From contig NC_043001.1 in assembly GCF_006345805.1 (NCBI RefSeq), positions 38,626,001 through 38,690,000 on the forward strand: a stretch of 64,000 nucleotides of DNA. Direction: 5' to 3'. The notes beneath the pieces were generated by a model, which was given only the letters and a program-made list of their open reading frames with translations, had not been told where the DNA came from and did not search any database. This DNA is from Octopus sinensis (lineage: Eukaryota). Of the stretch, positions 3,232 through 58,649 are shown in pieces (within the stretch, counting starts at the first letter, position 1; each line of letters opens with the position of its first letter). Both the position numbers and the translations under genes were made by a program.

Positions 3232-3461
3232 CTGTTATGGTGCTGTATATAGTAGTACTTCATCTCATGTCACCTTAAATTATTTGGGACTTATCACAGG
3301 CCACTGAACCAGTCTCTAAAACTCAGCAGGATGTCTGATAAACATTTAAGTTTTCTGTCATGTTCTAAGTATGTACATTCTCTTTCTTATTCTCATGTAT
3401 CAGATAATACCTCCCTAGATATATTTAGTTACATTAATAGATTGAGTATAATCATGCTTAC

Positions 3462-3506
3462 CTTCAGGTTTCTTGCTTGGTTTATTGACATTAAGATCAT
3501 TCACAC
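3462..3506 (-). CDS. Array micro-exon copy 1 (45 nt, phase 1-1): GVNDLNVNKPSKKPE; tyrosine removed by in-frame 6-nt deletion
   Basis: ttcttaaag| acceptor and G|GTAAGC donor; length divisible by 3; no stop. Confidence 0.65.
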
Positions 3507-4327
3507 CTTTAAGAAATTAAAAAATAAATCCCATACAATTATAGATATTATTTAAAATATATTAATATTGTGCTGAAACTAACAGAACTAACAGTAGGAA
3601 TTAACAATATCATATTATTTTCTCCATTTACATCTTAATACTATTATGAAATTAATAGAAAAAAAAAACACTGAATGGTGTAAAGTACAATTAAAGAAGA
3701 ATAAAGGTAGAAAATATTAAAGATAAATTTGAAAATCTACAAGAGCAAAGCTTATGATAGAAATAATGCAAAATGCACAATTATGAATTTTTGTTCATGT
3801 ATAAGGTTACATAACTTGTTTCTATTCAAAGGAAAAAGGGGCTAAATATTTGCTAATTCTTTGCTTAATTCATCTTATCACCACCATCGTTATCATCGCC
3901 ACCATAACCTTCATCATTGTTTATCCACTGTCCATGCTAGCATGAGTTTGTGAAGCAATCATAATTAAAACCAGTTCCTTTTTGCTATCACAAAACACCT
4001 TGGTCTGATCCACTGATCATAATTCTCTCATATTTTTTCATTTTGGTGTTGTTTTTAAGGCTGACCTTTCACATCATTAATACTTCATAAAGCCCCTCTT
4101 ACTTTAATTCTTTCCAAATTTTCTCAGCTGTTATTGTAATTTCTGAGTAGCACTTCACCACATGTCACATATGCTTAGTTGGGACTTAGCATCAGCCACT
4201 GATGTTGGTTTTAGACTTCAATAGATTCTTCCATAAAAGTACAAGTTTTCTGTGTTATATGTATATATGTATTACTTAATAACTCTTGAAGTTTATGTAG
4301 TTTTCTTAATAGACTGAATATAATTAC

Positions 4328-4378
4328 CATAGGTTTTCTTGCTTGGTTTATTGACTTTAGCATAAAGGTCATTCACAT
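4328..4378 (-). CDS. Array micro-exon copy 2 (51 nt): DVNDLYAKVNKPSKKTY
   Basis: ttccctaaag| acceptor and G|GTAATT donor; symmetric phase 1; open frame. Confidence 0.75.
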
Positions 4379-4559
4379 CTTTAGGGAATTAAAGAAAGAT
4401 TTTATTTAAAATATATTAATGCTGTGATGAAAGTATCAGAACTAATATTAATGAAAAACATTCACTCCCTCTCATACATAAAGGTACAAAGAAGTATAAG
4501 CAGGAACTTATGTATTCATTGTTTACACTAAGAACACCTTATGAAATTTCTACCAGCTC

Positions 4560-5540
4560 ATTTCCTACATAAAGAGCACATTCATTTTCCTGATAGTATC
4601 TGAGTTCAGTCTTTCTTCCTATATGGTAAAAAATGTGTTTTTACTAGATTCAATTTAAAATCTTTAAAATGCAGATTTTGCTATCATGTTTGGAATTTCT
4701 GCCTAACCCAACTGTTCTACAGATTCTGTTATAAAAACTAGGTCATAAGCATAAAGGTGTTTCAAGGTTGTCTAAAATACATCTTTCATAGTTTGGAGCC
4801 TAAATAAACAGGAAAGGCTGAACACTGAGTCCTGATAAAACCTATATGCATACTAAATTCATTGCGATTGCTCACCTTACTCACAGTGAATCTGCACACG
4901 GTTTTTATGGCTCACACAACTAATTCGTGTAAGTTTGGTTTCCTTAGCATCTACCAGACCAGATAGTGAATTACTCAGTCCAAATTACTCTCCAAATTCA
5001 CAAATGCTTAGTATAGGAACTTCCACCTAGCTAAATACTTATTTGTAGTTATTTCATTTGGAATATGAGCTCAATGATACAGCTTCTTGGCATATCCAGG
5101 TTAATCTTATTCTTAATCAATTTTTCAATAGCGAATGAATATTGTAAATCTCTAAATATCTATTCTCAAGAGACCAGCTACATTTCCTACTTTTTCATTC
5201 TTCAATTGCACTGGAATGCTGGTAGCTCTTCTGCTTCTACTTGGAATAAATTCACTCTTTGCTTTTGACATCAGTAAGAATGAGAAAGCCATTGTTATTC
5301 TATACATCTAAAGTGTGTCTTCTCTCTCGCAGACTGCCTGGCAATTTGGATGGCCTTGCATGACTGATCCTCATCTTGCACAATATATGCAAACTTTTGT
5401 TATTTTACCTTTCCTTGTGCTACGTATAGCCAAAATTTAGCTTCTCTTTAGTTGTTTGATATTTTCCACATTGCCCCCTTTCTATAAATCTTTCGCTTGT
5501 TATGATGCTACCTATAATATTGTCTCAGTGTGTGCCACCT
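4560..5540 (-). mobile_element. Ancient RTE-clade LINE fragment duplicated with the array unit
   Basis: Minus-strand translation gives decayed RTE linker/RT text (KLIKNKINLDM..., LQE.YLA, AFVNLEK), matching the younger RTEs at 25.5-26.0 kb and 28.4-28.8 kb. Confidence 0.75.
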
Positions 5541-5716
5541 TACACCATCACTTATCTAATCTATAGAGTTCAGTATGAGGTACCATAAAAGCTGCAGATT
5601 TTTTTCTGTTATAATCTGTCTTAGATATATAATTTTTGTCATATGTATTGTCATATATGTTAGTTAATACCTCTTGAACTCTTGTTAGTTATATTAATGA
5701 ACTGAATCATGCTTAC

Positions 5717-5743
5717 CATCAGGCTTCTTCCTAGTTATATTGT
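5717..5743 (-). CDS. Array copy 3: original acceptor lost; internal AG would give a 27-nt Tyr-less exon DNITRKKPD
   Basis: No AG at the canonical position (5768-5769). Internal tatcctaaag| lies 24 nt into the ancestral exon. G|GTAAGC donor retained; frame preserved. Confidence 0.4.
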
Positions 5744-6597
5744 CTTTAGGATAAAAATTGAACACAAATTTAAGGTGTTAAAAAATAATGACATATAATT
5801 CTAGATAACATTTAAAATGATGTATTGAAAGTATCGGAACAAATATTAATGAAAAACATTCACTCTCTTATGCACATATATATTCAAAGTTGTATAAGCA
5901 GGAATTAGTAATATATTATTATTTTCTCCATTTAGCTCAGATTATCATAACCAAATCAACAGAAAAAACAAAAGAATGAAAATACACTGAGTGATAAAAT
6001 AAAGTACAATTAATGATTAATAAAGGTAGAAATTGTTAATACGCATGAAAATCTATGTTTACATGTAATGCAAAATGCACATTTATAAATTTTTGTGTTA
6101 TGTAGGTTATATTACAGTGGCATCTCTATTGAAAGGAAAGATGGCCTAAATATTTGCTAACTATTTGCTTAATTTATCTTGTCATTATCATTGCCCCCAT
6201 TGTCATCACATTGATCAAACACTGTCATGGGTTTGTCAAGCCATCATAATTAAAACCATTTCCTCTTGGTTGTCACAACACACCTTGGCTTGATCCACTG
6301 ATCATAATTCTCTCTTATCATCTCATATTGGTGTAGTTTCTGAGGCTGGACTTTCATTAGTCTTTGGTACTATATAATGTTCCCTTACGTTCACTCTCTC
6401 CAAACCTGTCTATTATCTGTTATGGTAATTTCCAAAGTAGGATTTTATGTGTCACTTTGCGTTTTTTTAGTTGGGACCTTGCACCAGTCACTAATTTTGG
6501 TTTTAAACCCCAGCAGATTGTCTGTGTTATATATATCGGTTAATATCTCTTGAAGTTTATATAGTTTAATGAATGGACTGAATATAATTATGCTTAC

Positions 6598-6648
6598 CAT
6601 CAGTTTGCATACGTGGTTTGTTAACTTTAGCATAAAGTTCTTCCACAT
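6598..6648 (-). CDS. Array micro-exon copy 4 (51 nt): DVEELYAKVNKPRMQTD
   Basis: ttccttaaag| acceptor and G|GTAAGC donor; open frame. Confidence 0.78.
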
Positions 6649-6829
6649 CTTTAAGGAATTAAAGAAAGATATGATGATTTAAATATAGTAATACTGTGCT
6701 GAAAGTATCAGAACTAATATTAATGAAAAACATTCACTCCCTCACATACATAAATATTCAAAGAAGTATAAGCAGGAACGTATGTATGTATTGTTTACAC
6801 TGGGAACACCTTATGATATTTCTACCAGC

Positions 6830-7495
6830 TCATTTCCAGCATAAAGAGCACATTCATTTTCCTGATGGTATCTGAGTCCAGTCTTTCTTCCTATATTTTG
6901 CTAGATTAAATTTAATGCCCTTCAAATACAGATTTTACTATCATGTTTGGAATTTCTATCTGACCCAGTTTTTCTACAGATTCTGATATAAAAGCAGAAT
7001 CATCAGCATACATGTGTTTTGAAAGTTATCTATCTAAAATACATCTTATATAGCTTGGAGGCCTAAAGAAACAGGAAAGGCTGAGCACTGAGTTTTGAAA
7101 ACCCCCATATGCACACTTAATTCATTGCTATCACTCACCTTGCTCACAGTGATTCTGCACAAGGCTTGTATGGCTCACACAACCAATTCATCAAAATCCA
7201 GTTTCCTTAGCAACTACCAGATCAGATTGTGAATGGCTCAGCCAAAGGATTTGTCCCTTTCTCCAAATTCACAAATGCTTGGTATAGGAGCTTACTCCTA
7301 GCTAAGTACTTCTTTGTAGTTATTTCATTTGGAATATGATCTCAATGATACAGCTTCTTGGCATATCCAAGTTAACCCTATTCTTAATCAACTTTCTAAT
7401 AACCCATGGATATTCCAAATTTTTATATATTTAGTCTCAAGAGACCAGCTACTTTCCCTATCTTTACATTGTTCAATTGTGCTGTTATAACGCTG
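6830..7495 (-). mobile_element. Ancient RTE fragment (array-borne), interrupted at 7495 by the CR1 insertion
   Basis: Paralogous to 4560-5200; continues at 11956 on the far side of the CR1. Confidence 0.75.
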
Positions 7496-7578
7496 TTAGT
7501 TAGTTAGTTAGTTAATTTGGCTCAAAAGCAAATAGCAAGGCCATGTAGGGGGACATAGAGTTAAGTACAGGGTGGTGT

Positions 7579-10500
7579 TCATGTAAAGAGTTCAGGCCAC
7601 TTGAGGTCAAGGGAGGCTTTGAACAAAGCGGTCGTCGGCATCTTCACCATCTCGTCTGGCAGCTTGTTCCATGGATCCGCAACCCGGACGGAGAAAGCTC
7701 CTCTCCTTCGATTGAGATGAAATCGTTGCAGGTAGAGCTTATCGGAATGACCCCGCAGCCGACGCTCTGGGGCAGGAGTGAAGAACAGCTCTTTCGAGAG
7801 GTTACACTTTCCACTTATGATGTTGTGGGCGAGAATGAGATCACCACGGCGGCGGCGTTTTTCTAGAGAATAAAGGTCGAGCGTCCTCAGCCTTTCTTCA
7901 TAGGACAAATTTTTGAGACCATGAACCATGCGGGTAGCCAGCTTCTGGACTCTTTTGAGATGCTGTATGTCTTTGAGGAGATAAGGAGAAGATGCTTGAA
8001 TCCCGTACTCCAATATGGGTCTCACCAGCGTGACATAGAGTGGTAGGAATATGGCTGCTGTGAGCATTCCGAATGACCGTCGAATCAAGAACAGAATTCC
8101 GCGTGCTTTGTTGGCAGCATGGACGCACTGGGCCGAAGGCGAAAATGAGGAATCCACCAAGATACCCAGGTCCTTTACCTGATCAGTCCTCTCCAGCAGC
8201 AGACGACCCGGCTCGAAATCAAGTTGCGTTGCAGGAGGAGAGCCAATAGGCAGATGACAGCACTTTGACACGTTCAGACACAGGTCCCATTCGTTAGACC
8301 ACCTCCAAATTTGGTGGAGGCATCGACGAAGATCCTCTATATCACCGCGAGGAGCGACCAGTTTGATATCATCGGCAAATAGAAGGGTGTGTTGCATGAG
8401 GTCGTCGGGCAAGTCATTTATGAAGACTAAGAACAATAAGGGCCCAAGCACTGAACCTTGAGGCACGCCACTGCTCGCACTGAAGACGTCGGACCGCGAA
8501 CCATTAACTTGGACTTGGAAGGAGCGATCTGAGAGGAAGGCACCAACCCATCGTACAATATCCGGATGGAAACTATATGCTTGAAGCTTGACAAGTAATA
8601 GGCGGTGGTTTACCGAGTCAAAAGCTTTGGCAAAGTCCAATAAAACGATGTCAACAGCATCACTATCATCGAGGATGCGCATCACCAATTCTTCCATTAC
8701 CAGTAAGTTGGTCAAGCATGATCTCTTCGGCACGAAGCCGTGTTGGGAATCAGAGATAGAGGCTGTGTTTTGGAGGTGGAGCATCATACTTTTCTTAAGG
8801 ATGGTTTCGAACATCTTGCTGATTATTGATGTAAGGGAAACCAGTCGGTAGTTAAGCGGGTCTTCGCGGCTCCCTTTCTTGAAAATTGGGCAGATTATCG
8901 CTGTTCTCCAGTCTGCAGGTATAACACCCGTCGCCAATGACATATTGAATAGATGTGTTAAGGGCTCGCAGATGACCGGAGCCAATGCTTTGATAACCCG
9001 TGGGTGTATGCCGTCAGGGCCATGACCCTTGTTGACATCGAGGCCTTGAATAACACGTTTGACTTCGTCCCGCGTGATGACCAATTGAAGCATTGGAGGT
9101 ACCGATCTATCAAATGGAGGGGGTTCACGACCATCATCTTGTTTGAAAATAGTTGAAAAAGCCTCGGCAAATAATTGACTCTGTTGATAAGGGTCCTCAA
9201 TCGATACGCCTGTTGAGTCTACCAACGTTGCAATCTGGTTGTTCAAGCGGGAATTCCATTGGACATGGGCAAAGAAGGTTTTTGGATTGCTACTGGCATT
9301 TGCCGCGATTTTGTAGTCATAACTGAAGCGTTCTTCCTTTTCAATTTTCACGGCTCGGTCTCGTTGAGTTTTGTACACCTCAAAAGCTGCAGTCGAATCC
9401 AGATTTTTGAATTCAGCCCAAGCAATATCTCTGAGTCGAAGTTCTCGTTTAACCTTCTTTGTCACCCAGGGCTTGTGTTTCTTCTTCATGGGAAGCCCAA
9501 CGGGAACTGCCTGGTCAGTCAACCAGATTACATATGCTTTGAGGGATGACCATAGTTCGTCAACTGAGGACAACGTCATCAGGGATCGCCAGTCCAGAAG
9601 CGCGGAAGCCTCGGTTAGAATTTCAAGATTAATTGCAGAGAAGACTCCACGTGGCAGCGAAGTAGTCGTGGGCGTAGAAAAAGTTGTGTGCATGATGAAC
9701 TTCAGGACCGCATGATCACTCTTGGCAAGAGGGGCGCACACAGATACGTCTGACACTGATCTTGGATAGCGGGAGAATACCAGATCCAGCATAGATGGCT
9801 GCTGCCCAGACCGATGCCTTGTCGGATATTCAACATGTTGCGATAGAAAACAATCTTCAGCCATGCCAAGAAGGGCCTGGTCGAACCGGGAAGATGTTGT
9901 ACAAACTGATGCGGGCCAATCAATCGTGGGAGCGTTGAAGTCTCCTAGTATCAAACAGTCATGCGAAGCTGAAACGAATCTTATCGCTTCGAGTAAATGA
10001 GCATCATCCTGGGGGTCGGCAAGAGGTGGCCTGTAAACAGCTAACACGGGCAGGCAAAACTCGGATAGGTTCAGCTTGCAATAGACGGCATCGAATTTTG
10101 TTGTAGGTTGAGCATTAGTGGGTAGAATACCGCTGGACGGTTTGTGATCAGATTTAACATACACAGCAACACCTCCAACTCGCCTTTTTTCTCTGTCACA
10201 TCTGAAGAGGACGTAGCCCTGTAGGTGGATTTCTGAGTCCTTTACTGCTGGAGTCAGCCAAGTCTCGGTGATAGCTATCACATCAGGGGAGTCACGTATG
10301 GCCAGTGTAAATAGTTCGCTGAAGTTTGGAAATAAGGAGCACGAGTTGGTATAGACGATGCTGAGCTGTGAAGTTTGAGGGGCGGGAGTTGGGGAACAAG
10401 CAGAATAAGGGGTATCAGAGATAGCATCGTTGACGGGGGTATCTACTTCACTTCGATTTGCCCTCAATTCACTTTCCCTGTCAGCACTACAGCATGCGAC

Positions 10501-10725
10501 CAGAGGTAGGACTTGATTATTTGTCCGTCTTGGATGCGTAAACCCTTCTCTCCCATCTGTTTTGTCATCTTTAGTTCGGATATTAGGTTTCTCCAGCGAA
10601 TTCTCTCTCTCAGTGAGTATTCCTCGCGAAAACCCATATTGGGGTCCTCCCAGACATGCGTCTGAGCTCTGTTCAGAAAGGTTGAAGCCTCCTGATCGGA
10701 AGAAAAGATTACCCTTATTGGGCAT
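7579..10725 (-). CDS. CR1 ORF2: apurinic endonuclease plus reverse transcriptase (1048 aa)
   Basis: APE motifs YTNSCSL, AITETWL, GGVAVYV, YRPP, LGDFN, LDLVF, SDH. RT motifs GPDGI, QHGF, DFAKAFD, GVPQGSVLGPLLF, FADD, DLG. CR1-type C-terminus RRRGDLI...RGH...FSVRV..WN.LP. Confidence 0.95.
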   Translation of the reverse strand: MPNKGNLFFRSGGFNLSEQSSDACLGGPQYGFSRGILTERENSLEKPNIRTKDDKTDGREGFTHPRRTNNQVLPLVACCSADRESELRANRSEVDTPVNDAISDTPYSACSPTPAPQTSQLSIVYTNSCSLFPNFSELFTLAIRDSPDVIAITETWLTPAVKDSEIHLQGYVLFRCDREKRRVGGVAVYVKSDHKPSSGILPTNAQPTTKFDAVYCKLNLSEFCLPVLAVYRPPLADPQDDAHLLEAIRFVSASHDCLILGDFNAPTIDWPASVCTTSSRFDQALLGMAEDCFLSQHVEYPTRHRSGQQPSMLDLVFSRYPRSVSDVSVCAPLAKSDHAVLKFIMHTTFSTPTTTSLPRGVFSAINLEILTEASALLDWRSLMTLSSVDELWSSLKAYVIWLTDQAVPVGLPMKKKHKPWVTKKVKRELRLRDIAWAEFKNLDSTAAFEVYKTQRDRAVKIEKEERFSYDYKIAANASSNPKTFFAHVQWNSRLNNQIATLVDSTGVSIEDPYQQSQLFAEAFSTIFKQDDGREPPPFDRSVPPMLQLVITRDEVKRVIQGLDVNKGHGPDGIHPRVIKALAPVICEPLTHLFNMSLATGVIPADWRTAIICPIFKKGSREDPLNYRLVSLTSIISKMFETILKKSMMLHLQNTASISDSQHGFVPKRSCLTNLLVMEELVMRILDDSDAVDIVLLDFAKAFDSVNHRLLLVKLQAYSFHPDIVRWVGAFLSDRSFQVQVNGSRSDVFSASSGVPQGSVLGPLLFLVFINDLPDDLMQHTLLFADDIKLVAPRGDIEDLRRCLHQIWRWSNEWDLCLNVSKCCHLPIGSPPATQLDFEPGRLLLERTDQVKDLGILVDSSFSPSAQCVHAANKARGILFLIRRSFGMLTAAIFLPLYVTLVRPILEYGIQASSPYLLKDIQHLKRVQKLATRMVHGLKNLSYEERLRTLDLYSLEKRRRRGDLILAHNIISGKCNLSKELFFTPAPERRLRGHSDKLYLQRFHLNRRRGAFSVRVADPWNKLPDEMVKMPTTALFKASLDLKWPELFT

Positions 10726-11633
10726 GGTCTAGTATCTGAGGTTGAGTTCGCTTGGAATCTTCCTAGCCGAGCGACCTTATGGATACTGACATTTTCGTTG
10801 ACAGAGAACAATTCTCCAACTAAAATGGAAACAAAATTAATGTCTTCTTTTAGGCGGTTTATGCCTGTATCACAGGTGGATTCAGCTTTACCATAAATTA
10901 TTGCTGATCTTGAGTGGGCAAAATGTTCTCTACTATGAGCTGCGGTATTCGATTCTTCGTTGGATGATTTCGAAAGGGTGGTTTCATAGCCATCAGACTT
11001 ATGTCGGCCTGTGGGGTCGATCGGAATGGGTTTAGTGGTCATAACTTTCCTGCCTGGTTTGGAACTGCACTGCCTCTTCTTCGGTTTGGGGGAGCACCAC
11101 TCCCCAGATGAACTCACATCGAGATCGTTCAGAATTGGTTGAGCAATGGCATTAATGGGAAGGACAAGTGAGGGAGAATCCAAACAGATTTTATCGTGAT
11201 CAGGTTTCATAGCTAAATCTGCCCCACTGGAGTTTTGACTACGTTTCTTCTTTTGGGGAGAACAACGGTCTTCAGGTGGGTTTGAGTCTACACTCCTCAA
11301 ATTAGGTTGGGGAACCTCCGGGACCGAAAAGGCAGATGAGGAAGAATCCGCACAGGAACGATCATGTGCAGAAACGACCGCCGGTTCCTTCGCCTTCTTT
11401 GGCCGCTTCGATTTTGTTCCCTTCGGTTTGGATGTCTCCAGGGAAGAAATCAAGGGTGGCTCTGCATCAATAGGAGACTGTTTATTCAGTAAAAGAGCAA
11501 CAACAGACTTTAGGTGCTCGACCTCTTGTTTGAGCAACAGCAACTGCTCGTTGAGCTGACTATTGGTAGGACCATCATCTTGATGAGAAGCCCTTCTTGC
11601 AGATCTCAGTTTCGATCTGTAGGTAGCTGACAT
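10464..11633 (-). CDS. CR1 ORF1 (389 aa; coiled-coil N-terminus, RRM-like C-terminal half)
   Basis: Open 389 aa upstream of ORF2; heptad-like LNEQLLLLKQEVEHLKSVV; IIYG.AES...IHKVARLG...RP.PIRVIF segment typical of CR1/L2 ORF1. Confidence 0.85.
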   Translation of the reverse strand: MSATYRSKLRSARRASHQDDGPTNSQLNEQLLLLKQEVEHLKSVVALLLNKQSPIDAEPPLISSLETSKPKGTKSKRPKKAKEPAVVSAHDRSCADSSSSAFSVPEVPQPNLRSVDSNPPEDRCSPQKKKRSQNSSGADLAMKPDHDKICLDSPSLVLPINAIAQPILNDLDVSSSGEWCSPKPKKRQCSSKPGRKVMTTKPIPIDPTGRHKSDGYETTLSKSSNEESNTAAHSREHFAHSRSAIIYGKAESTCDTGINRLKEDINFVSILVGELFSVNENVSIHKVARLGRFQANSTSDTRPCPIRVIFSSDQEASTFLNRAQTHVWEDPNMGFREEYSLRERIRWRNLISELKMTKQMGEKGLRIQDGQIIKSYLWSHAVVLTGKVN

Positions 11634-11955
11634 GATAGATGGTTGACCAAAAACAATCTTCTATGGGCTCTAGGACAAATCTGAGTTAAATCAGGAACAA
11701 AAAACAGCTGCAATCCTTGTAGGAGTAGGCAACAGCAGACAAAATCTGAGAGAGTTTGGGCTGAGCCGAATCACAATCCAAGATTGAAAGCAGACGGTGA
11801 AACGAGTCGGGAACCCTTCCTAATTGTCTGAAGCAGCTTTAGGATAAGGGATAGTAGGTCCAACTTTAGAATATTGATATGCATGTAAAATGTTCCACAC
11901 GATTAAATATCATTTGACGTGCCATTTAGTACTTCAATAATTGCGTCTGCGCATG

Positions 11956-12320
11956 TAAAACTGGAATGCTGGTAGCTCTTCTGCTTCTATTTGGAATAAA
12001 CTTACTCTCTTTACTTTTGGCATTAGTAAGACTGAGGAAGACATTGTTATTCTATACATCTATCCAGTGTCTCTTCTCTCTTGCAAACAGTCAGTCAATT
12101 TGGATGGACTTGCATGACTGATCCTCATCTTGCACAATATATGCCAACTTTTGTTATTTTGTCTTTCCTTGTGCTATGTATAGCCAACGTTTAGCTTCTC
12201 TTTAGTTGTTTGTTATTTTCCCCATTGCCTTCTTTCTACAAGTCTTTCACTTGTTATGATGCTACCTATAATATTGTCTCAGTGTGTGCCACCTTGCACC
12301 ATTACTTATCTAATCTACAG
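11956..12320 (-). mobile_element. Ancient RTE fragment (continuation of 6830-7495)
   Basis: Paralogous to 5210-5540. Confidence 0.7.
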
Positions 12321-12475
12321 AGTTCAGTACATAGTGCCATAAATACTGCAGATAATCTTCTGGTATAATCTGTCTTAGATATATAATTTTTGTCATATAT
12401 ATTGTCATATATGTTAGTTAATACCTCTTGAACTCTTGTTAGTTATATTAATGAACTGAACATAATCATGTTTAT

Positions 12476-12502
12476 CAGCAGGCTTCTTCCTACTTGTATT
12501 GT
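12476..12502 (-). pseudogene. Array copy 5: pseudo-exon (donor mutated to ATAAAC)
   Basis: Homologous to copies 3/6/8 (DNTSRKKPA frame), but the GT donor is lost. Confidence 0.6.
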
Positions 12503-13249
12503 CTTTAAGATAAAAATTATACACTAAATTAAAGAGTTAAAAAAATAAATGACATATGACTATAGATAATATTCAAAATATATTTATGAAGCATTGAAAG
12601 TATCAGAACAAATATCAATGTGAAACATTCACTCCTTCATACACAAATATACTCAGTGCTGTATATGTAGGAAATAGGAAAGTTACATTATTTCCCCCAT
12701 TTAGCTCAGATTATCATTACCAAATTAAAACAAAACAAACAATGAAAAATATTGAGTGGGATAATGAAGTACAATTAAGGATTAATAAACGTAAAAATTG
12801 TTGATATACATTCCAAAATCTATACGAGTAAATTTTATATATAATGCAAAATGCACATTTATAAACTTTTGTTTTATGTAGGTTATATTACACTGTTGTC
12901 CCTAGTCAAAGAAAAATTGATCAATATTTGCTAACTCTTTGCTTAATTCATTTTGTCATCATTAGTCAGCATTTTGTCATCATCAGCATCATCATTGATC
13001 AACTACTGTTGATGCCCTGCAAAGGTTTGTCAAGTGATCATGATTAAAATCAGTTCCTCTTTGCAATCACAGCACACCTTGGCTTCATCCACATCATAAT
13101 TCTCCCATATCATCTCATTTTGGTGTAGTTTCTGAGGTTGGACCTTCAAGTCTTTGGTACTATATAAAGCTCCCTTACCTCCACTCTTTGACTAAAAGGC
13201 AGTGTACCAGCATGGCTGCAGTCAAACGAATGCAACAAGTAAAAGGATA

Positions 13250-14090
13250 ATTATTCAACAGAGTCATTAGTATTAATTTCCAAGGTTTGTTGTTGAGAAT
13301 ACCTCTTTCATAGTTTGGAGGCCTAAATAAGCAGGAAGGTTGAGCACTGAGATCTGATAAACCCCATATGCACACTAAATCCATTGTTATTACTCACCTT
13401 GCCCATAATGATTCTGCACAAGGCTTGTATGGCTCACACAACCTATTCATATATGTCCTGTTTCCTTAGCATCTACCAGGTTAGATACTAAATGACTAAG
13501 TCAAAGGGTTTGTTCCTTTCTCCAAATTCACAAATGCTTGGTATTGGAGCTTACTCAAAGCTAAGTACCTCTTGTATATATTTCATTTGGAATATGAGCT
13601 CAATGATACAGCTTCTTGTCATATCCAGATTGATACTATACTTAATCAACTTTCCAATAACCCATGGATATTCTAAACCTCTAAATATCTAGTCTCAAGA
13701 GAGCAGCTACATTTCCTACCTTTTCATTCTTTAATTGCACTGTCATGAAACTGTAAAACTGGAATGCTGTTAGACCTTCTACTTCTACTAGGAATAAATT
13801 CAGTCTTTACTTTGGTATCAGTAAGACTGAGGAAGCCATTGTTAATCTATATATTTATAGAGTGCCTCTTCTCTCTTGCAGACTGTCAGCCAATTTGGAT
13901 GGACTTGCATGTTTGATCCTCATCTTGCATAATACATGCAAACTTCTGCTTTTTTTGCCCTTCCCTTTGCTATGTATAGCCACAATTTAGCTTCTCTAGT
14001 AGTTTGATATTTTCCTTATTGCCTCCTTTCTACAAGTCTTTCACTTGTTATGGTGCTACCTATAATATTATCTCAGTGTGGGCCACCTTG
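13250..14090 (-). mobile_element. Ancient RTE fragment (array-borne), preceded by the 3' stub of a SINE at ~13185-13250
   Basis: Paralogous to 4700-5540. The stub ctttgactaaaaggcagtgtaccagcatggctgcagtcaa matches the end of the SINE at 15515-15903. Confidence 0.72.
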
Positions 14091-14254
14091 CACCAGCCAC
14101 TTATCTAATCTATAGAGTTCAGCATGTGGTTCAGTAAAGGTTGCAGATTTTCTTCTGTTATAATCATAGAAACATAATTTTTGTCATATATGTTAGTTAA
14201 AACCTCCCAAACTCTTGTTAGTTATATTAATGAACTGAACATAATCATGCTTAC

Positions 14255-14281
14255 CAGCAGGTTTCTTCTTACTTGTATTGT
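14255..14281 (-). CDS. Array copy 6: acceptor shifted, candidate 27-nt Tyr-less exon DNTSKKKPA
   Basis: Long AG-free zone upstream; first AG is tatcctaaag|; G|GTAAGC donor intact; in frame. Confidence 0.42.
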
Positions 14282-15146
14282 CTTTAGGATAAAGATTGAC
14301 CACAAATTAAAAAAAATGATGACATGATTATAGATAACATTTAAAATATATTTGGGATGTATTCAAAGTATCAGAACAAATATTAATGAAAAATATTCAC
14401 TCTCTCATACACATATACATTCAAAGTTGTATAAGCAGGGATTAGTAATATCATATCATTTTCCTCATTTAGCTCAGATTATCATTACCAAATGAACAGA
14501 AAAAAACCAACGAATAAAAAAAACATTAAATGATATAATGAAGTAAAATTAAAGATTAATAAAGGTAAAAATTGTTAACACACATGAAAAATCTATAAAT
14601 TTACATGTAATGCAAAATACACATTTGTAAATTTTGTTTTATGTAGGTTATATAACACTGTGCTTTGTATTCAAAGGAAAATTGGCCTAAATATTTGCTA
14701 ACTCTTTGCTTAATTTATCTTATCATCATTATCATTGATCAACCACTGTTGATGCTAACATGGATTTGTCCAGCGATCATAATTAGAATCAGTTCCTCTT
14801 TGCTATCACAACACACTTTGGCTTGATCCACAGATCATAATTCTCTCTTATCAACTCAATTTGGTGTAGTTTCTGAGGCTGGGCCTTCAAGTCTTTGGTA
14901 CTATATAAAGCTCCCTTACTTTCACTCTGTCCAAACCTGTCTCTTATATTTTCTGGTAATTTCCAAAGTAGTATTTTATATGTTACTTTGTGCTTTTTAT
15001 TTGGGACCTTGCACCAGCCACTGATTTGTACTTTCCACCTCAGCAGGTTGTCCCATAAGAACACAAATTTTCTCTGTTATATGTATCAACTAAACTGCTT
15101 GAAGTTTATATAGTTTCCTTAATGTACTGAATATAATTATGCTTAC

Positions 15147-15197
15147 CATAGGTTTCCTTGTTTGGTTTATTGACTTTAGCATAAAGGTCATTCATAT
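15147..15197 (-). CDS. Array micro-exon copy 7 (51 nt): DMNDLYAKVNKPNKETY
   Basis: ttccctaaag| acceptor and G|GTAAGC donor; open frame. Confidence 0.78.
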
Positions 15198-15514
15198 CTT
15201 TAGGGAATTAAAGAAAGATTTTATTTAAAATATATTAATGCTGTGATGAAAGTATCAGAACCATTCACTCCCTCACATACATAAAGGTATAAAGAAGAAC
15301 AAGAAGGAATTTTTGTATGCATTATTTAGACTGAGAACACTTGTTGAGATTTCTACCAGCTCATTTCCTGCATACAAAACACATTCTTTTTCCTGATGAT
15401 ATCTGAGTTCAGTCTTTCTTCATATATAGTAAAACATTTGTTTTTACTAGATTCAATTGAAAATCTTTTAAATGCAGATTTTGCTATCATGTTTGGAATA
15501 TCTATCTGACCTTA

Positions 15515-15903
15515 GGCGCAGGCATGGCTGTGTAGTAAGAAGGTTGCTTCTCAATCACATGTTTCTGGGCTCAGTTTCACTGTGTGGCATCAGGCAAGTG
15601 TCCTCTATTATATCTTCGAGCTGACCAAAGCCTTGTGTGTGGATTTGGTAGACAGAAACTGAGAGATGTCTGTCGTATATATATATATATATATATAGTG
15701 TGATTGTGCCTGTGTTTGACCCCCATCGTCGCTTGACAACTGATGTTGGTGTGTTTATGTTCCTACAACTTAATGGTTTGGCAAAAGTGACTGACAATAA
15801 GTAATAGGATTACAAACAATACGTCCTGGGGCCAATTTCTTTGACTAAAATGCTGTGTACCAGCATGGTCACAGTTAAAGGACTGAAACAAGTAAAAGAA
15901 TAA
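15515..15903 (+). mobile_element. tRNA-derived SINE with internal (TA)n
   Basis: tRNA-like head ggcgcaggcatggctgtgtagtaagaag, followed by ggcatcaggcaagtg (CORE-like block) and tail gactgaaacaagtaaaagaataa. Absent from the paralogous sites at ~6960 and ~18490. Confidence 0.8.
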
Positions 15904-15904
15904 G

Positions 15905-16790
15905 TGTTCGACAGATTTTGTTATCAGAGCTACATCATCAGCATACAGGTGTTTCCAAGGTTAGTTGTTGAGAATACCTCTTCCATAATTTGGAGGCCTA
16001 AATAAGCAAGAAGGCTGAGCACTGGCATATGATAAACCCCATATGCGCATTAAATTCGTTGCTATTACTCACCTTGCCCATAATCATTCTGCATATGGCA
16101 TGTATGGCTCACACAACCTATTCATGTAAGTCCAGTTTCCTTAGAATCTACCAGGTTAGATACTGAATGACTAAGTCAAAGGGTTTGTCCCATTCTCCAA
16201 ATTCAAAAAGGCTTGGTATAGGGGCTTACTCAAAGCTAAGTACCTCTTGTAGTTATTTTATTTGGGATATAAGCTCAGTGATACAGTTTCTTGGCATATC
16301 CAGGTTGATCCTATTCATAATCAACATTCCAATAACCCATGGATATTCTAAACCTCTAAATATCTAGTCTCAAGAGAGCAGCTACATTTCCTACCTTTTC
16401 ATTCTTTAATTGCACTGTCATGAAACTGTAAAACTGGAATGCTGTTAGACCTTCTACTTCTACTAGGAATAAATTCAGTCTTTACTTTGGTATCAGTAAG
16501 ACTGAGGAAGCCATTGTTAATCTATATATTTATAGAGTGTCTCTTCTCTCTTGCAGACTGTCAGTCAATTTGGATGGACTTGCATGTTTGATCCTTATCT
16601 TGCATAATACATGCAAACTTCTGCTTTTTTTGCCCTTCCCTTTGCTATGTATAGCCACAATTTGGCTTCTCTAGTTGTTTGATATTTTCCTTAATGCCTC
16701 CTTTCTACAAGTCTTTCACTTGTTATGGTGCTACCTATAATATTGTCTCAGTGTGTGTCACCTTGCACCAGCCACTTATCTAATCTATAG
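15905..16790 (-). mobile_element. Ancient RTE fragment (array-borne)
   Basis: Near-identical to 13250-14090. Confidence 0.72.
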
Positions 16791-16928
16791 AGTTCAGCAT
16801 ATGGTTCAGTAAAGGTTGTTATAATCTACTGTTATAATCATAGAAACATAATTTTTGTCATATATGTTAGTTAAAACCTCTCAAACTCTTGTTAGTTATA
16901 TTAATGAACTGAACATAATCATGCTTAC

Positions 16929-16955
16929 CAGCAGGTTTCTTCTTACTTGTATTGT
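16929..16955 (-). CDS. Array copy 8: acceptor shifted, candidate 27-nt Tyr-less exon DNTSKKKPA
   Basis: Same structure as copy 6. Confidence 0.42.
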
Positions 16956-17599
16956 CTTTAGGATAAAGATTGACCACAAATTTAAAAAATGATGACATGA
17001 TTATAGATAACATTTAAAATATATTGAGGATATATTCAAAGTATCAGAACAAATATTAATGAAAAACATTCACTCTCTCATACACATATACATTCAAAGT
17101 TGTATAAGCAGGGATTAGTAATATAATATTATTTTCTTCATTTAGCTCAGATTATCATTACCAAATTAACAGAAAAAAAACAATAGAATAAAAGACATTG
17201 AGTGGTATAGTGAAGTACAACTGAAGATTAATAAAGGTAAAAATTGTTCATACACATGAAAATCTATGTTTACATGTAATGCAAAATACACATTTGTAAA
17301 CTTTTGTTTTATGTAGGTTATATAACACTGTGCTTTGTATTCAAAGGAAAATTGGCCTAAATATTTGCTAACTCTTTGCTTAATTTATCTTATCATCATT
17401 CTCATTGATCAACCACTGTCAATGCTAGCATAGGTTTGTCCAGCGATCATAATTAAAACCAGTTTATCTTTGCTATCACAACACACCTTGGCTTGATCCA
17501 CATATCATAATACTCTCATATCATCTCATTTCGGTGAGGCTGGACCATCAAGTCTTTGGTACTATATAAAGCTCCCTTACCTCCACTCTCTGACTAAAG

Positions 17600-17905
17600 T
17601 CAAATGAATGCAACAAGTAAAAGAATAATTGTTCAACAGAGTCATTAGTATTAGTTTCCAAGGTGAGTTGTTGAGAATACCTCTTTCATACTTTAGTGGC
17701 CTAAATAAGCAGGAAGGCTGAGCACTGAGTCCTGAAAAATTCCATATGCATACTAAATTCATTGCTATTTGCTGACCTTACCCACAATGATTCTGCACAA
17801 GGCTTGTATGGCTCACACAACCTATTCGTGTAAGTCCAGTTTCCTTAGCATCTACCTGGTCAGATACTGAATGACTAAGTCAAAGAGTTTGTTCTTTTCT
17901 CTAAA
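17600..17905 (-). mobile_element. Truncated ancient RTE fragment (array-borne)
   Basis: Paralogous to 13250-13530; cut by a deletion junction at ~17910. Confidence 0.65.
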
Positions 17906-18126
17906 TTCACCATTTCCAAACCTTATCTGTCTCTTATCTGTTATGGTAATTTCCAAAGTAGTATTTTATGTGTTACTGTGTTTTTTTATTTGGGACCTTG
18001 CATCAACCATTGATTTGTACTTTCAACCTCAGCAGATTGTCTCATATTTTCTCTGTTATATGTATCAGTTAATATCTCTTGAAGTTTATATAGTTTTATG
18101 AATGGACTGAATATAATTATGCTTAC

Positions 18127-18177
18127 CATCAGTTTGCATACGTGGTTTGTTGACTTTAGCGTAAAGGTCTTCCACAT
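18127..18177 (-). CDS. Array micro-exon copy 9 (51 nt): DVEDLYAKVNKPRMQTD
   Basis: ttccttaaag| acceptor and G|GTAAGC donor; Tyr codon TAC versus TAT in the other copies (synonymous). Confidence 0.78.
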
Positions 18178-18339
18178 CTTTAAGGAATTAAAGAAAGATA
18201 TGATTTAAATATAGTAATGTTGTGCTGAAAGTATCAGAGCTAATATTAATGAGAAACATTCACTCCCTCACATACATAAATATTCAAAGAAGTATAAGCA
18301 GAAATTTCTGTATGCATTGTTTAGATTGGTAACACTCAG

Positions 18340-19175
18340 CCCATTTCCTGCATACAGAGCACATTCATTTTCTTGATGGGGTCTGCTCAGTCTTTCTTCC
18401 TACATGGTAAAACATTTGTTTTTACTAGATTCAAGATAAAATCTTTTAAGTGCAGATTTTCCTATCATTTTTGGAATTTCTATCTGACCCAATTGTTCTA
18501 CAAATTCTGATATAAAAGCTAAGCCATCAGCATACAAGTGTTTCCAAGTTTATTTGTCTTAAATACATCTTTTATAGCTTGGAAGCCTATATAAACAGGA
18601 AAGGCTGAACACGGAGTCCTGATAAACCCCCATATGCACACTAAATTCATTGCTATTGCTTAACTTGCTCACACTGATTCTGCACATGGCTTCTATGGAT
18701 CACACAACTTATCCATTTAAGTCCATTTTCCTTGGCATCTACCAGATCAGATAGTGAATGACTCAGTCAAAAGGTTAGTCCCATTCTCTAAATTCACAAA
18801 TGCTTAGTATAGGAACTTACTACTAGCTAAGTACTTCATTGGAATATGATCTCAATGATAGAGCTTGGCACAAAACCAAACAGTATCTCATCCAGGTTAA
18901 TCCTTTTCTTAAATAATTTTTAAATGACCCATGGATTTTCTAAATCTCTCAGAAGCTACTCTCAAGAGATGAACTAACTTCCCTAAATTTGATTGTTTAA
19001 TTGCTCCACGTGTTGTAATACTGTGAAATTAGATAGCTGGAACCTCTGCTGCTTCTACTTGGAGTCAATTCACTCTCTTCTATTGTCATCAGAAAGACTG
19101 TGTAAATTATTAAATTTCTATACATCTACCCAGTGTCTCTTCTCTCTTGCAGACTGTCTGTCAATTTGGATGGCC
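18340..19175 (-). mobile_element. Ancient RTE fragment (array-borne); best-preserved copy
   Basis: Minus strand reads RINLDEILFGFVP, matching RVSLDEMQFGFVP of the younger RTEs in this window. Confidence 0.8.
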
Positions 19176-19666
19176 TAACATGTTATTAAGGATTAATATA
19201 GAAAACATGGAAGATATATTTGAAATCTCCAAGAGATAGATGTAATGCAATATGTAGATTAAATTTTTTTGTTTATGTATTAGGTTATATTACGCTGTTA
19301 TTTCTACTCAAACTGTGTAGTAGTAACTGTGTTCAGTCTTTCTTTGTATATAGTAAAACATTTTTGGTTGATTAAATTTTTGGCGTAGTTTCTAAGGTTG
19401 GTTCACCAAGTCTTTCGTACAACATAAAGCTCCCTTTCTTTCATTCTTTCCAAACCTGTCTCTTAGTGGTTATGTTAATTTCCAAAATAGTATTTCACAT
19501 GTTACTTTTTGTTTTGTATTTGGGACCTTGAACCAGCCATTGATCTTGGCTTTAGAGCTCAGTAGATTGTCCCATAAAAGCACAAGTATTCTTTATGATA
19601 TGTGTCAGTTAATACCTCTTGAAGATTATGAAGTTTTATGAATGGACTGAATATAATTAGGCTTAC

Positions 19667-19717
19667 CATCAGCTTGCTTGCTTGGTTTATTGACTTTGGC
19701 ATAAAGTTCATTCACAT
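19667..19717 (-). CDS. Array micro-exon copy 10 (51 nt): DVNELYAKVNKPSKQAD
   Basis: ttctttaaag| acceptor and G|GTAAGC donor; open frame. Confidence 0.78.
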
Positions 19718-20558
19718 CTTTAAAGAATTAAAGAAAGATATTATTTAAAATATATTAATGCTGTGCCAGAACTAATATTAATGAGAAACATTAACTCTCT
19801 CACATAAATAAAGGTACAAAGTAGTATAAGTAAGAATTATCAAATTCACTTAATTTTTATCTGTTTACTTCAGGGTATCATTGAGTGGTGTAAAGTACAA
19901 TTAAAGGATTAACAAAGATAGAAAATAGTGAAAATATATTTGAAAATCTGCAAGAGGCAAAGTTTATATTTGTAACACAAAATGCATATTTATAAAGTTT
20001 TGTTTAAGAATATTCATATGTAGGTTATTACACTGTTTTCTCTACTGAAAGGAAACTAGGCCCAAATATTCGCTGACATGTTGCTTAATTTATGTTGTCA
20101 TTATTGTCATCATAACCATCATTCATCCACTTTCCATGCTAGTATGGGTTGGTCAAGCCATCATAGTTAAAATCAATTCCTTTTTGCTATCACAACACAC
20201 CTTGGCTTAGACTATTGATCATTATTCTCTCATATCATTTCATTTTGGTGTAGTTTCTGAGACTGGCCCTTCAAGTCTTCTCTAGTACTACATAAAACAC
20301 CCTTACTTTCATTTTATCCAATCGTGTCTCTTAGCTATTATGGGAATTTCTGAGTAGTACTTTGCCACTTGTCACTTATGCTTAGTTGGGTCCCTGCACT
20401 AACCACTAACCTGAGCTTTAGACCTTAGCAGGCTATCTCATAAAGGCACAGTTTCTATCTTAAAAGTGTGTATATTCTCTTCCCAACTGTCTAGTGTCAG
20501 TTAAAACTTCCCTAAATGTATGTACTTATATTAATGAATTGAATATAATTATGCTTAC

Positions 20559-20600
20559 CATTAGTTTTCTTTCCTGGTTTATTGACTTTAGCATTCATAT
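20559..20600 (-). CDS. Array micro-exon copy 11 (42 nt): (N/D)MNAKVNKPGKKTN; DLY removed by in-frame 9-nt deletion
   Basis: ttccttaaag| acceptor and G|GTAAGC donor; in frame. Confidence 0.65.
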
Positions 20601-21599
20601 CTTTAAGGAATTAAAAAAAAAAGAACATACAATTATAGATAATATTTAAATATATTGTGCTGCAAGTATCAGGACTAATGTTAATGAGAAATATTCACTT
20701 CCTCAAACACATAATTGAACAAACTAGTATGAGTTAGCAATATTACACCATTTTTGCTTTTTCATTTGGAAACTACATTAATACAGTTGAGTGTCTGCAA
20801 GAGCTAAAGTTTATTATGTACATGAATGTAAAATTCACATTGTCAAAGCTACAATATAGGTTACTAAATTGTATACTCTAATCAATGCAAGAATGAACCA
20901 AAATGTTTGCAAAATCTTTGTACATTGTATACTCTACTAGAAGGAAAGTAACCAAAATGCTTGCAGATTTCTAGCTTAATGACTGCCTCCTCCTCCTCCC
21001 CTTCTTCTTCTTCTTTGCCACTGCCATCACCAGCATCACCAATATTGTTACTTTTCATTTGATTTCTATGCCGACAAGGGTTGGTTGAGAAGTCTTGTTT
21101 AAAAAAAAAAGTGACTGTTCAGGATCAGATCCACCTAGGCTTGGTCCCTTGACCATAACTCTTGCATATGTTATCATGTTTATGTGGTTTCTCAGACTGG
21201 ATTACATTCATAACATCAACCATTGCAAAATGTGTGTACAAAGTGCATTTTTTCCCATGGCACCAGCACTAAAAAGGTTGTCATGTCCTTGACAAAACAG
21301 GACTAAAGTGTTCTCTCAATACTTCAATGCAAATCTACTAAACAGTTTACAGAGTTTTGGATATATTCTTTTATGCTAACAGAATTAGTAATTTAGTCAC
21401 AGACATTTTACCCTATGATAAATTTGCGCATGCATCAAACACTTCACAAAATGCATTAAATGCACCAGCACTTGTGATGTTACCATATATCCAGATTTTC
21501 ATTGCAATAGAAATAGGTGGCAAGGTTAGCTTGTAAAAGAGAGCACAACTGATCAACAGTCAAGATATTGATGAAAACAGAGGTTGAATGTCAATGAAA

Positions 21600-28354: not shown

Positions 28355-30610
28355 ACCTAGTCACCCGTATAGTCAACCAGGTGATACACGAAGGAGTCAT
28401 ACCCAATGACTGGTGCAGCAGCATACTAGTCAACTGCTACAAAGGTAAAGGTGATGCCCTAGATACAAATAATTACAGAGGTATCAAGCTGTTGGATCAA
28501 GTAATGAAGGTTACGGAGAGGGTCATAGCCCAACTAATTAGAGAGAGAGTTAGTTTAGATGAGATGCAGTTTGGGTTCGTGCCAGGGAAAAGTACCACTG
28601 ATGCTATATTCCTGGTAAGGCAGCTGCAGGAGAAATACCTAGCCAAAGATAAGCTCCTGTACCTGGCTTTCGTTGACATGGAGAAAGCTTTTGATAGGGT
28701 CCCCCGATCCCTTATCTGGTGGTCAATGAGGAAACTAGGGATAGATGAATGGCTGGTGAGGACTGTGCAAGCCATGTACAGAGATGCCGTAAGTAAGGTT
28801 AGGGTTGGCAACATGTACACAGAAGAATTCAAATAGAGGTTGGGGTCCACCAGGGTTCAGTACTCAGCCCCCTCCTATTTATCATAGTACTCCAGGCAAT
28901 TACGGAGGAATTCAAGACAGGCTGTCCCTGGGAGCTCCTCTACGCTGACGACCTTGCTCTTATTGCTGAGTCACTATCAGAACTGGAGGAGAAGTTCCAG
29001 GTGTGGAAGGAGGGTTTAGAATCAAGGGGCCTTAGAGTCAACCTAGCTAAAACCAAAGTACTAATAAGTAGAAAGGTAGACAATCCACAAATATCTTCAG
29101 GAAGATGGCCCTGCTCGATCTGTAGAAAAGGTGTAGGTAGAAACTCTATAAGATGTACCCAGTGTAAGCTATGGACACATAAGAGGTGCAGCAATGTCAA
29201 AGGTAGGCTAACTGGGAAGATAGTTTTTGTATGTGGCAGATGCTCGGGAGCATTAACCTCCGAAAATCTGCAGAAAACAACTTCCGTCACTTTCCAGGGG
29301 GAAAAACTAGAAGTAGTTGATAGCTTCCGTTATCTAGGTGACCAAGTCAGTAGTGGGGGTGGGTGCGCTGAAAGTGTAACTGCTAGAATAAGAATAGCCT
29401 GGGCAAAGTTTAGGGAGCTCTTACCTCTGCTGGTGACTAAAGGCCTCTCGCTCAGAGTAAAAGGCAGACTGTATGATGCGTGTGTACGAACAGCCATGCT
29501 ACATGGCAGCGAAACATGGACCGTGACTGCTGAGGACATGCGTAAGCTCGTGAGGAATGAAGCCAGTATGCTCCGATGGATGTGTAATGTCAGTGTACAT
29601 ACTCGACAGAGCGTTAGCACCTTGAGAGAAATGTTGTACCTAAGAAACATCAGTTGTGGTGTGCAAGAGAGACGATTGCGCTGGTATGGTCATGTGGCGA
29701 GAATGGATGAAGATAGGTGTGTGAGAAAGTGCCAATCCCTAGCAGTTGAGGGAACCCGTGGAAGAGGTAGACCCAGGAAAACCTGGGACGAGGTGGTGAA
29801 GCACGACCATCGAACTTTAGGCCTCACTGAGGACAATGACCGGTTGAGGCAAGCGAAGTCGATATAGAACCTCATCCGACGACAGACACCCATGCCAACC
29901 CCCCATGCTTGCGAAGGACATGTTGGGGAGCGAAATCGAAATCGAAATCGAAACCGAATTGAACCAGCCAGGATCCCTGGCCTGGTGGTACGTAAAAAGC
30001 ACTATCCGACTCGTGGCCATGGCACGTAAAATACTCCAATGCGACCGTACGACAGGCACCCATGCCAACCCCCCTTTGCTTGTGAAGACATGTTGGGGCA
30101 AGCGAAATCGAAATCGAATTGAACCAGCCAGGATCCCTGGTCTGGTGGTACGTAAAAAGCACTATCCGACTCGTGGCCGTGGCACGTAAAATACTCCAAT
30201 GCGACCGTACGACAGGCACCCTTGCCAACCCCCTTTGCTTGTGAAGACATGTTGGGGAAATCGAAATCGAATTGAACCAGCCAGGATCCCTGGTCTGGTG
30301 GTACGTAAAAAGCACTATCCGACTCGTGGCCGATGCCAGCACCGCCTCGACTGGCTTCTGTGCCGGTGGCACATAAAATACACCAATCTGACCGTGGCCG
30401 TTGCCAGCCCCGCCTGGCACCTGTGCAGGTGGCACGTAAAAAGCACCCACTACACTCACGGAGTGGTTGGCGTTAGGAAGGGCATCCAGCTGTAGAAACA
30501 TTGCCAAATTAGACTGGAGCCTGGTGCAGCCTTCTGGCTTCCCAGAACCCCGGTCGAACCGTCCAACCCATGCTAGCATGGAGAACGGACGTTAAACGAC
30601 GATGATGATG
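28355..30610 (+). mobile_element. Relatively young 5'-truncated RTE-clade LINE with expanded 3'UTR
   Basis: ORFs 28381-28836 and 29001-29867 are consecutive RT segments (QFGFVPGKSTTD, HQGSVLSP, YADD in the intervening frame, YLG, GSETW, RLRWYGHV); ends in a (GAT)n tail. Confidence 0.93.
29875..30335 (+). repeat. ~165-170 bp tandem repeat (about 2.7 copies) with internal (GAAATC)n in the RTE 3' region
   Basis: accc(a/t)tgccaacccc recurs at ~29887, ~30057 and ~30218. Confidence 0.85.
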
Positions 30611-58162: not shown

Positions 58163-58649
58163 TAGTACGGTCATGTGATGTGTATGGATTTGCATAAAGA
58201 ATTGCATAAAGAATTGCCTCTCTAATTATGAGATTTCAGCATCGAGAACAGATGATGATGATGATATGTGTGTGTGTATGTATCATGTTTTAGGTATAAT
58301 GTGTTTGTGAAAACCTCACAACAGAAAATCAGTTTCTGCACTATATATTAAGAGGCACCCAAATAGATTCTTTTTTCAATTCCCCTCAAAAGAAAGCAAT
58401 ATGATCAACAAAATCAAACAAAATAACCACTTTTATATATGAAAACAGCAATGTCTAAACATACACAGTACAATAAGTATACATAAAAACATTTGAAAAA
58501 TACATTAGAGAATAAATAAGAATCTCAATATTGTAATAAAGTATGTTTTTATCACAAAAGATGTTGACTATAATGTGAAGAAGCAGAATGATAATTATTG
58601 AAAGATGAGGGACACTATCTTAATCAGCTTGAGGGGTTAAGAACTTATA

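Follow-up and report, generated by a model that had tools for sequence, protein, structure and literature searches.

Introduction

Tyrosine motifs of the form E-x-(I/L)-Y-A-x-V occur in tandem in the disordered regions of EPIYA-type proteins (mammalian Pragmin and p140Cap, and bacterial secreted effectors such as CagA of H. pylori and the Bartonella Beps). Src or Abl phosphorylates these motifs, which serve as binding sites for Csk and further SH2 proteins. Binding to Csk has been described for EPIYA-type segments including the EPIYA-A segment of CagA, and for the EPLYA and EGLYA sites of p140Cap, which are Abl substrates. Tyrosine 685 of VE-cadherin, within LYAQV, is a Src target, and its phosphotyrosine docks the SH2 domain of Csk. 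The extended motif EPxYAxV has been reviewed as strongly depleted in mammalian proteomes, with Pragmin as the main host counterpart. Among invertebrates, Alr2 of Hydractinia carries a conserved NLYAQV that resembles an immunoreceptor tyrosine-based inhibition motif (ITIM), and a splice variant of Alr1A adds VYAQV on an alternative exon. Here, we describe a tandem array of small exon-like units, the intact members of which encode a motif ending in LYAKVNKP, in 64 000 nucleotides (nt) of Octopus sinensis DNA (assembly GCF_006345805.1, contig NC_043001.1, positions 38 626 001–38 690 000); this whole stretch is referred to as the window, and all positions given below are counted within it.

The array shares parts with each of several described systems. 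It has the motif type of the EPIYA-type proteins, but lies in an animal genome with introns, has D or E in place of P at position −2, and differs from the bacterial cases, which are single open reading frames. VE-cadherin Y685 shares the L-Y-A-x-V core, and the residues that follow LYAQV there (QKP) also resemble NKP, but this is a single site in a cadherin tail, with no repetition and no dedicated exon array. Alr2 and Alr1A-Sv2 of Hydractinia are comparable as invertebrate receptor tails with xLYAQV in which an alternative cytoplasmic exon 8 brings VYAQV; they differ in having one motif per protein, on alternative exons that are not tandem duplicates, in a cnidarian receptor of the Ig superfamily. 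The multi-exon tail of PECAM-1 and the exon clusters of Dscam consist of symmetric exons of equal length that arose by local duplication together with conserved flanking intron, and the array resembles tandem exon duplication of this type in the symmetry and equal length of its exons and in their conserved flanking intron. In the literature searched, no case was found of exons duplicated in tandem with a single tyrosine docking motif in each.

Results

Layout of the micro-exon array

Positions 3387–20754 of the minus strand were resolved by repeat analysis and alignment into a tandem segmental array of 11 copies of one small unit, the units being approximately 0.9–2.7 kb long and 68–92% identical to one another. 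Five copies contain an intact exon, two have in-frame variants at the ends of the array, and four lack the acceptor AG; all are on the minus strand. A six-frame search of the window for YAKV gave five matches, again all on this strand.

The intact exons lie at 19667–19717 ((D)VNELYAKVNKPSKQAD), 18127–18177 ((D)VEDLYAKVNKPRMQTD), 15147–15197 ((D)MNDLYAKVNKPNKETY), 6598–6648 ((D)VEELYAKVNKPRMQTD) and 4328–4378 ((D)VNDLYAKVNKPSKKTY). Each is 51 nt long and lies between a pyrimidine tract that ends in AAAG and a GTAAGC donor, except that the exon at 4328 has the donor GTAATT after a 6-nt deletion in the intron. They are read as 2 nt, 16 codons and 1 nt, that is, as phase 1-1 exons, and this phase-1 frame is the sole frame open in all seven spliceable copies. 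The 17-residue unit from each intact exon has the form D-(V/M)-(N/E)-(D/E)-L-Y-A-K-V-N-K-P followed by five variable residues; the first 12 residues of the unit at 18127 are the C-terminal motif of the Ridgeia protein P0005. Every exon starts with AT and ends with G, so that joining of exon to exon restores GAT (Asp) and any subset of the exons keeps the reading frame.

The end copies carry deletions in multiples of three that leave both the splice sites (AG/GT) and the frame in place. At 20559–20600 the exon is 42 nt long because an in-frame 9-nt deletion takes out DLY, giving DMNAKVNKP ((D)MNAKVNKPGKKTN), and at 3462–3506 it is 45 nt long because an in-frame 6-nt deletion takes out the tyrosine, giving VNDLNVNKP ((G)VNDLNVNKPSKKPE). 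The four copies of the B type without an acceptor AG lie at 16929–16979 (VVNLYPKDNTSKKKPA; a probable pseudo-exon), 14255–14305, 12476–12526 (where the homologous acceptor AG and the GT donor are both lost) and 5717–5767 (VFNFYPKDNITRKKPD).

The B copies at 5717–5767, 14255–14305 and 16929–16979 keep an internal pyrimidine-rich stretch ending in CCTAAAG and a GTAAGC donor. To judge from these letters, the internal acceptor and the donor would bound a 27-nt phase 1-1 exon encoding DN(T/I)(S/T)(K/R)KKP(A/D), as the internal AG of the copy at 16929 could yield.

An earlier sequence-only reading of this DNA had proposed 11 copies of a 51-nt phase 1-1 exon, five of them with canonical AG/GT sites and the peptide D(V/M)x(D/E)LYAKVNKP. 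The five exons were recovered exactly, on the minus strand, and the number of copies stands at 11; the common length of 51 nt does not extend to the two shortened copies (42 and 45 nt), nor do intact splice sites extend to the four that have lost the acceptor AG. In sequence terms the exons have the features of cassette micro-exons: none exceeds 51 nt, the length is a multiple of 3, the splice sites are canonical and the flanking intron is conserved. They also show the equal length and phase in tandem that mark a mutually exclusive cluster of the Dscam type.

Selection on the motif core

Across the five intact exons the 24-nt core encoding LYAKVNKP varies at four sites (TAT/TAC, GCT/GCC, GTC/GTT and AAT/AAC), all of them third codon positions and all synonymous, as the sequence-only reading had stated. 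For the eight core codons the proportion of synonymous differences (pS) was 0.34 and that of non-synonymous differences (pN) 0.00 over the ten pairs of exons, whereas outside the core pN was 0.29 in the three N-terminal codons and 0.26 in the five C-terminal codons. An empirical null was built from every gap-free window of eight codons, in all frames, in the aligned introns and in two conserved intronic elements; none of the 366 + 180 + 518 windows (approximately 1060) was invariant in amino acids. This comparison across copies bears out the purifying selection on the core that had been claimed earlier, and the core is under purifying selection.

The introns flanking the five exons differ by 9–39%. 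In the five-way alignment the lowest variability extends from approximately 35 nt upstream of the exon (the acceptor tract) through the LYAKVNKP codons to approximately 30 nt past the donor. The earlier statement that flanking codons and introns diverge freely thus holds for the flanking codons, with their pN of 0.26–0.29, but not for the approximately 35 nt of intron upstream and 30 nt downstream, which belong to the best-conserved part of the unit.

The non-core codons diverge faster than the introns. Two flavours of exon were distinguished, A1 (4328 and 15147), with N-D before the core and S/N-K-K/E-T-Y after it, and A2 (6598 and 18127), with E-E/D before it and R-M-Q-T-D after it. Of 27 non-core exon positions, 7 carry fixed differences between A1 and A2, compared with 10 of the 246 intron positions lying within 150 nt (Fisher p = 4e-4); in the core the figure is 1 of 24. 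Such a density suggests either diversifying selection or old lineages with homogenised introns. Purifying selection on the core and divergence of the surrounding residues beyond the neutral level both indicate a translated exon, and the coding status of the exons is well supported.

The A1 (…SKKTY) and A2 (…RMQTD) exons alternate along the array, with fixed differences approximately six times denser in the non-core codons than in the adjacent introns. The A1 exons end in TY, and the junction with the next exon makes a second tyrosine context, TYDV.

Two further candidates for coding or RNA function in the units were rejected. In-frame read-through of the donor (GKHNYIQSI...) shows non-synonymous changes and an early stop in one copy, and the conserved intronic elements C and D, considered as extra exons or RNAs, have insertions and deletions of lengths not divisible by three, lack any window of invariant amino acids and have no Rfam match.

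These data bear on two explanations that would deprive the array of most or all of its coding function. The first holds that it is a relic, one motif exon having been copied together with its intron, so that a large intron now contains copies of which most or all are unspliced pseudo-exons, with no more than one in use. The loss of splice sites in 4 of 11 copies and of the tyrosine in two would fit such a history, as would the long interspersed element (LINE) within the array and the lack of any database protein with several units; moreover, whole units are 68–92% identical, introns included, and part of the exon similarity is recent ancestry. A core with pS of 0.34 and pN of 0 across five copies with divergent introns, however, needs selection on more than one copy; in each of the five the splice signals are better conserved than any other intronic sequence, and non-synonymous differences keep the two flavours apart. 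We consider a relic unlikely, while giving it appreciable weight.

The second explanation is a non-coding satellite or transposon-derived repeat in which the open frame is an accident. The window is full of mobile elements and the units were missed by the list of open reading frames, as might be expected of such a repeat. Against this, the unit was found nowhere else in the 64-kb window, an absence on which a dispersed repeat had also been rejected; the window gave no Rfam matches, and the combination of synonymous-only variation with 12 residues identical to annelid proteins would be inexplicable without coding. The probability left to a non-coding repeat is very slight indeed.

Occurrences of the motif outside the window

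The concatenated peptide of the seven spliceable exons was searched against 5.8 billion proteins. No match was obtained at E ≤ 0.01, and at E ≤ 10 there were three weak matches, P0001, P0002 and P0003. P0001, from a Logan contig of 29% GC, is a small protein whose tail contains LYAKVNK twice and LYATVNK once; its layout is read, from sequence features, as a signal exon, then a membrane segment, then the motif tail. On a Logan contig of 29% GC, L001 199–576 and 753–1444 are adjacent genes for small single-pass membrane proteins with tyrosine-rich tails, one of them with three LYA(K/T)VNK motifs. P0002 and P0003 (contigs from ENA) each correspond to a last exon that encodes the C-terminal half of an IRS-type PTB domain (PF02174, E = 6.8e-9) followed by two or three motif copies, the N-terminal half of the domain being encoded by the next exon upstream.

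A search with the reconstructed PTB protein gave a full-length Logan protein of 181 residues and NP493_21g02022 of Ridgeia piscesae, both small PTB proteins with (D)VEDLYAKVNKP after the PTB domain, near the C-terminus. The Ridgeia stretch DVEDLYAKVNKP matches the exon at 18127 over 12/12 residues. A motif profile search, covering 1.84 billion representatives, added KAI0228231.1 of Lamellibrachia satsuma, a PTB-domain protein in which the motif reads VEDLYATVNKP; two unnamed proteins, each with four motif copies; and XP_071501037.1 of Diadema antillarum, which combines ten ELYA(K/E/N)(V/I) units with a membrane segment and three Sushi domains. The core decapeptide of the window also occurs twice, among other tyrosine motifs, in WP_208434409.1 of Bartonella taylorii (P0006), a BID-domain effector of the type IV secretion kind.

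In L003 (5657–6046 and 10001–10390) and L002 (8236–8406), the annelid-type PTB adaptor tail exon was seen twice on one contig, and an exon upstream of it contains more acidic tyrosine motifs (DYDYANI and EPAYDNATL), which are also found at the N-terminus of P0004.

Two of these groups are close to what the array would encode. The annelid IRS-type PTB adaptors (Ridgeia, Lamellibrachia and the ENA and Logan proteins) share the motif with it, as (D)VEDLYAKVNKP or VEDLYATVNKP within a C-terminal tail that is disordered, but their motif lies in the exon of the second PTB half, they have 1–3 copies compared with 5–7 here, and no PTB exon was found in the window. The Diadema protein is a single-pass receptor whose cytoplasmic tail of tandem ELYA(K/E/N)(V/I) motifs has the architecture of an expandable tail; it is unlike the array in that the tail is one exon, the units are approximately 30–40 residues long without NKP, and the animal is a deuterostome. 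The view of the sequence-only reading, that the motif would be a tyrosine site in the cytoplasmic part of a receptor or adaptor, gains outside backing from the annelid PTB adaptors, the Diadema Sushi receptor and the small membrane protein.

The same occurrences bear on the idea of an extracellular or secreted repetitive protein, in which the unit, rich in Lys and Tyr, would serve a structural or adhesive role. Phase 1-1 symmetry is characteristic of exons for shuffled extracellular modules. The symmetry of the array exons and the richness of the unit in K, Y and P would suit such a protein, and a membrane or signal exon that would settle the topology was not seen. All the outside occurrences of the motif, in contrast, are cytosolic, each following either a PTB domain or a membrane segment whose inner side bears basic residues. 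An extracellular repeat is accordingly given only a small probability.

A degenerate DNA pattern for LYAKVNKP gave more than 120 single matches in JGI metagenomes and was set aside as uninformative, the matches falling in an unrelated bacterial protein or in non-coding low-GC elements. The protein (RLELYAKVNKPPEVKFKD) is conserved in soil bacteria of high GC, and the non-coding matches come from a short element on low-GC contigs; these occurrences (L006–L125) are coincidental. A literature search for LYAKVNK or YAKVNKP found nothing relevant.

Motif class and candidate docking partner

The sequence-only reading had compared the motif with the CagA EPIYA-A segment, a likeness that was found in the literature together with the Csk binding of that segment, and had also likened it to ITIM and to immunoreceptor tyrosine-based switch motif (ITSM) sites. 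The second comparison fails on the formal definitions. All five exons have Y-A-K-V, with V among the residues (I/V/L) that an ITIM has at +3, but at position −2 each of the five has D or E, in place of the S, I, V or L of an ITIM or the Thr of an ITSM. The A2 exons, with E-(E/D)-L-Y-A-K-V, have the Glu at −3, the aliphatic residue at −1, the Ala at +1 and the Val at +3 of EPIYA-type sites, whereas the A1 exons and the exon at 19667 have N at −3. The Pro at −2 is replaced by D or E, and the motif otherwise fits the extended EPxYAxV.

The sequence pY-A-K-V also fits the Csk SH2 ligand consensus, which was reportedly given by Songyang et al. in 1994 as pY-[A/S/T]-x-[V/I/M]. By analogy with these systems the reading of the unit as a docking motif is plausible, and it has comparative backing from the outside occurrences.

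Parent gene and splicing

In tblastn searches of the 64 kb, three PTB sequences gave no PTB exon, although such exons of the locus could lie outside the window, and the array was the only match to the set of PTB, Sushi, membrane-segment and tail proteins. No membrane-segment or ectodomain exon upstream was matched by similarity, by which short membrane-segment exons are not recognisable. Complementarity of the docking/selector kind between the array units and either flank was limited to matches of 10–15 nt at chance level, and a docking/selector pairing or long inverted repeat tying the array to its flanks was rejected, as only (TA)n and these chance matches were seen.

The choice of splicing mode is affected by these results. 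In mutually exclusive, flavour-selecting splicing one unit (A1 or A2) would enter each transcript, so that the residues around a single motif would be tuned, not the number of motifs. The copies are of the same length and phase, and the two flavours alternate with their differences concentrated in the exon; in addition, a single unit would score below the database threshold, which would fit the empty searches. As 51 nt is divisible by three, however, double inclusion would carry no frameshift penalty, the array units and flanks share no docking/selector complementarity, and the outside homologues have several motifs per protein. We regard such a mechanism as improbable. From the sequence, cassette use would be the simpler reading, because no competing RNA pairing was seen and the 51-nt length tolerates double inclusion.

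Mobile elements and other features of the window

The window is AT-rich eukaryotic DNA (GC approximately 0.38), dense in mobile elements and with several reverse-transcriptase fragments. The open frames of the minus strand outside the array had the look of transposon or random sequence. The LINE that splits the array (7505–11950, minus strand) shares the orientation of the exons and is not part of the motif system. It has an ORF1 of 389 residues and an ORF2 of 1048 residues with endonuclease and reverse transcriptase domains, both open, and a (TAAC)n 3′ tail, and may, on these sequence features, be a young, active copy. Outside the array, a retroelement fragment with a PHD-type zinc finger was found at 29001–29867 (plus strand), a 1.7-kb (TGTA)n/(TG)n tract at 49006–50688 and a DDE_3 transposase remnant at 57620–59500.

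Discussion

The explanation that we favour, with somewhat better than even confidence, is that the array consists of tandemly duplicated coding micro-exons of one animal gene on the minus strand, which encode an expandable docking tail of tyrosine motifs. The array probably forms such a tail with a variable number of motifs. The number of motifs was set by repeated segmental duplication, four of the copies having later lost their splice sites.

The unit would be located in a disordered, cytoplasmic stretch of a signalling protein. With any subset of exons in frame, the gene could carry from none to five tyrosine motifs, and two tyrosine-less spacer units. The tyrosine, with acidic residues at −2 to −4, Leu at −1 and Ala at +1, would by analogy be phosphorylated by a kinase of the Src or Abl type, and pY-A-K-V might then recruit an SH2 protein, for which Csk is the leading candidate. 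The more exons were included, the more docking sites would be provided.

Several observations weigh against a tail of this kind. In nucleotide terms the conservation of the core exceeds that of the nearest intron only modestly, and the acceptor, AAG, is a weak site. Neither a transcript nor a splice junction nor a parent gene was found for the exons, and no upstream or downstream exon (PTB, Sushi or membrane segment) was recognised in the other 46 kb of the window. Among the 5.8 billion database entries there is no protein with at least two window-type units, and, if the source genome has been annotated, the array exons are in no stored gene model. Finally, in every outside example the motifs are packaged in one large exon and not in micro-exons: the Diadema tail is a single exon, and the annelid-type tail shares its exon with the PTB domain. 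Micro-exon packaging would from this be special to the window, with the caveat that most database proteins are plain open-reading-frame calls, blind to micro-exon genes.

A broader proposal may be put forward tentatively, and we hold it to be more doubtful than probable. On this proposal (E/D)-x-L-Y-A-K-V-N-K-P would be a docking motif of the EPIYA class that is ancient in animals and so far undescribed. It would be present in PTB adaptors and receptors from annelids to echinoderms; amplified here one exon at a time, it would form a tail in which splicing can set the number of motifs, and it would also be the endogenous template that bacterial EPIYA-type effectors imitate. The parts involved, tyrosine docking motifs and tandem exon duplication, are known, and the more interesting side is an EPIYA-like motif that is conserved and repeatedly amplified in invertebrate signalling proteins.

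If the exons of the favoured tail are spliced as proposed, the locus would be a case of short-linear-motif dosage built by exon duplication and potentially set by splicing, which would offer a simple genomic route by which the strength of a scaffold could be tuned. An endogenous invertebrate family of EPIYA-like LYAKVNKP motifs, unmentioned in the searchable literature, is suggested. As the decapeptide is common to the annelid adaptors, the array and the Bartonella effector, it becomes directly testable which motif of the host is imitated by the bacterial effectors, and if the motif is indeed ancient, the view of such motifs as nearly absent from animal proteomes would be revised.

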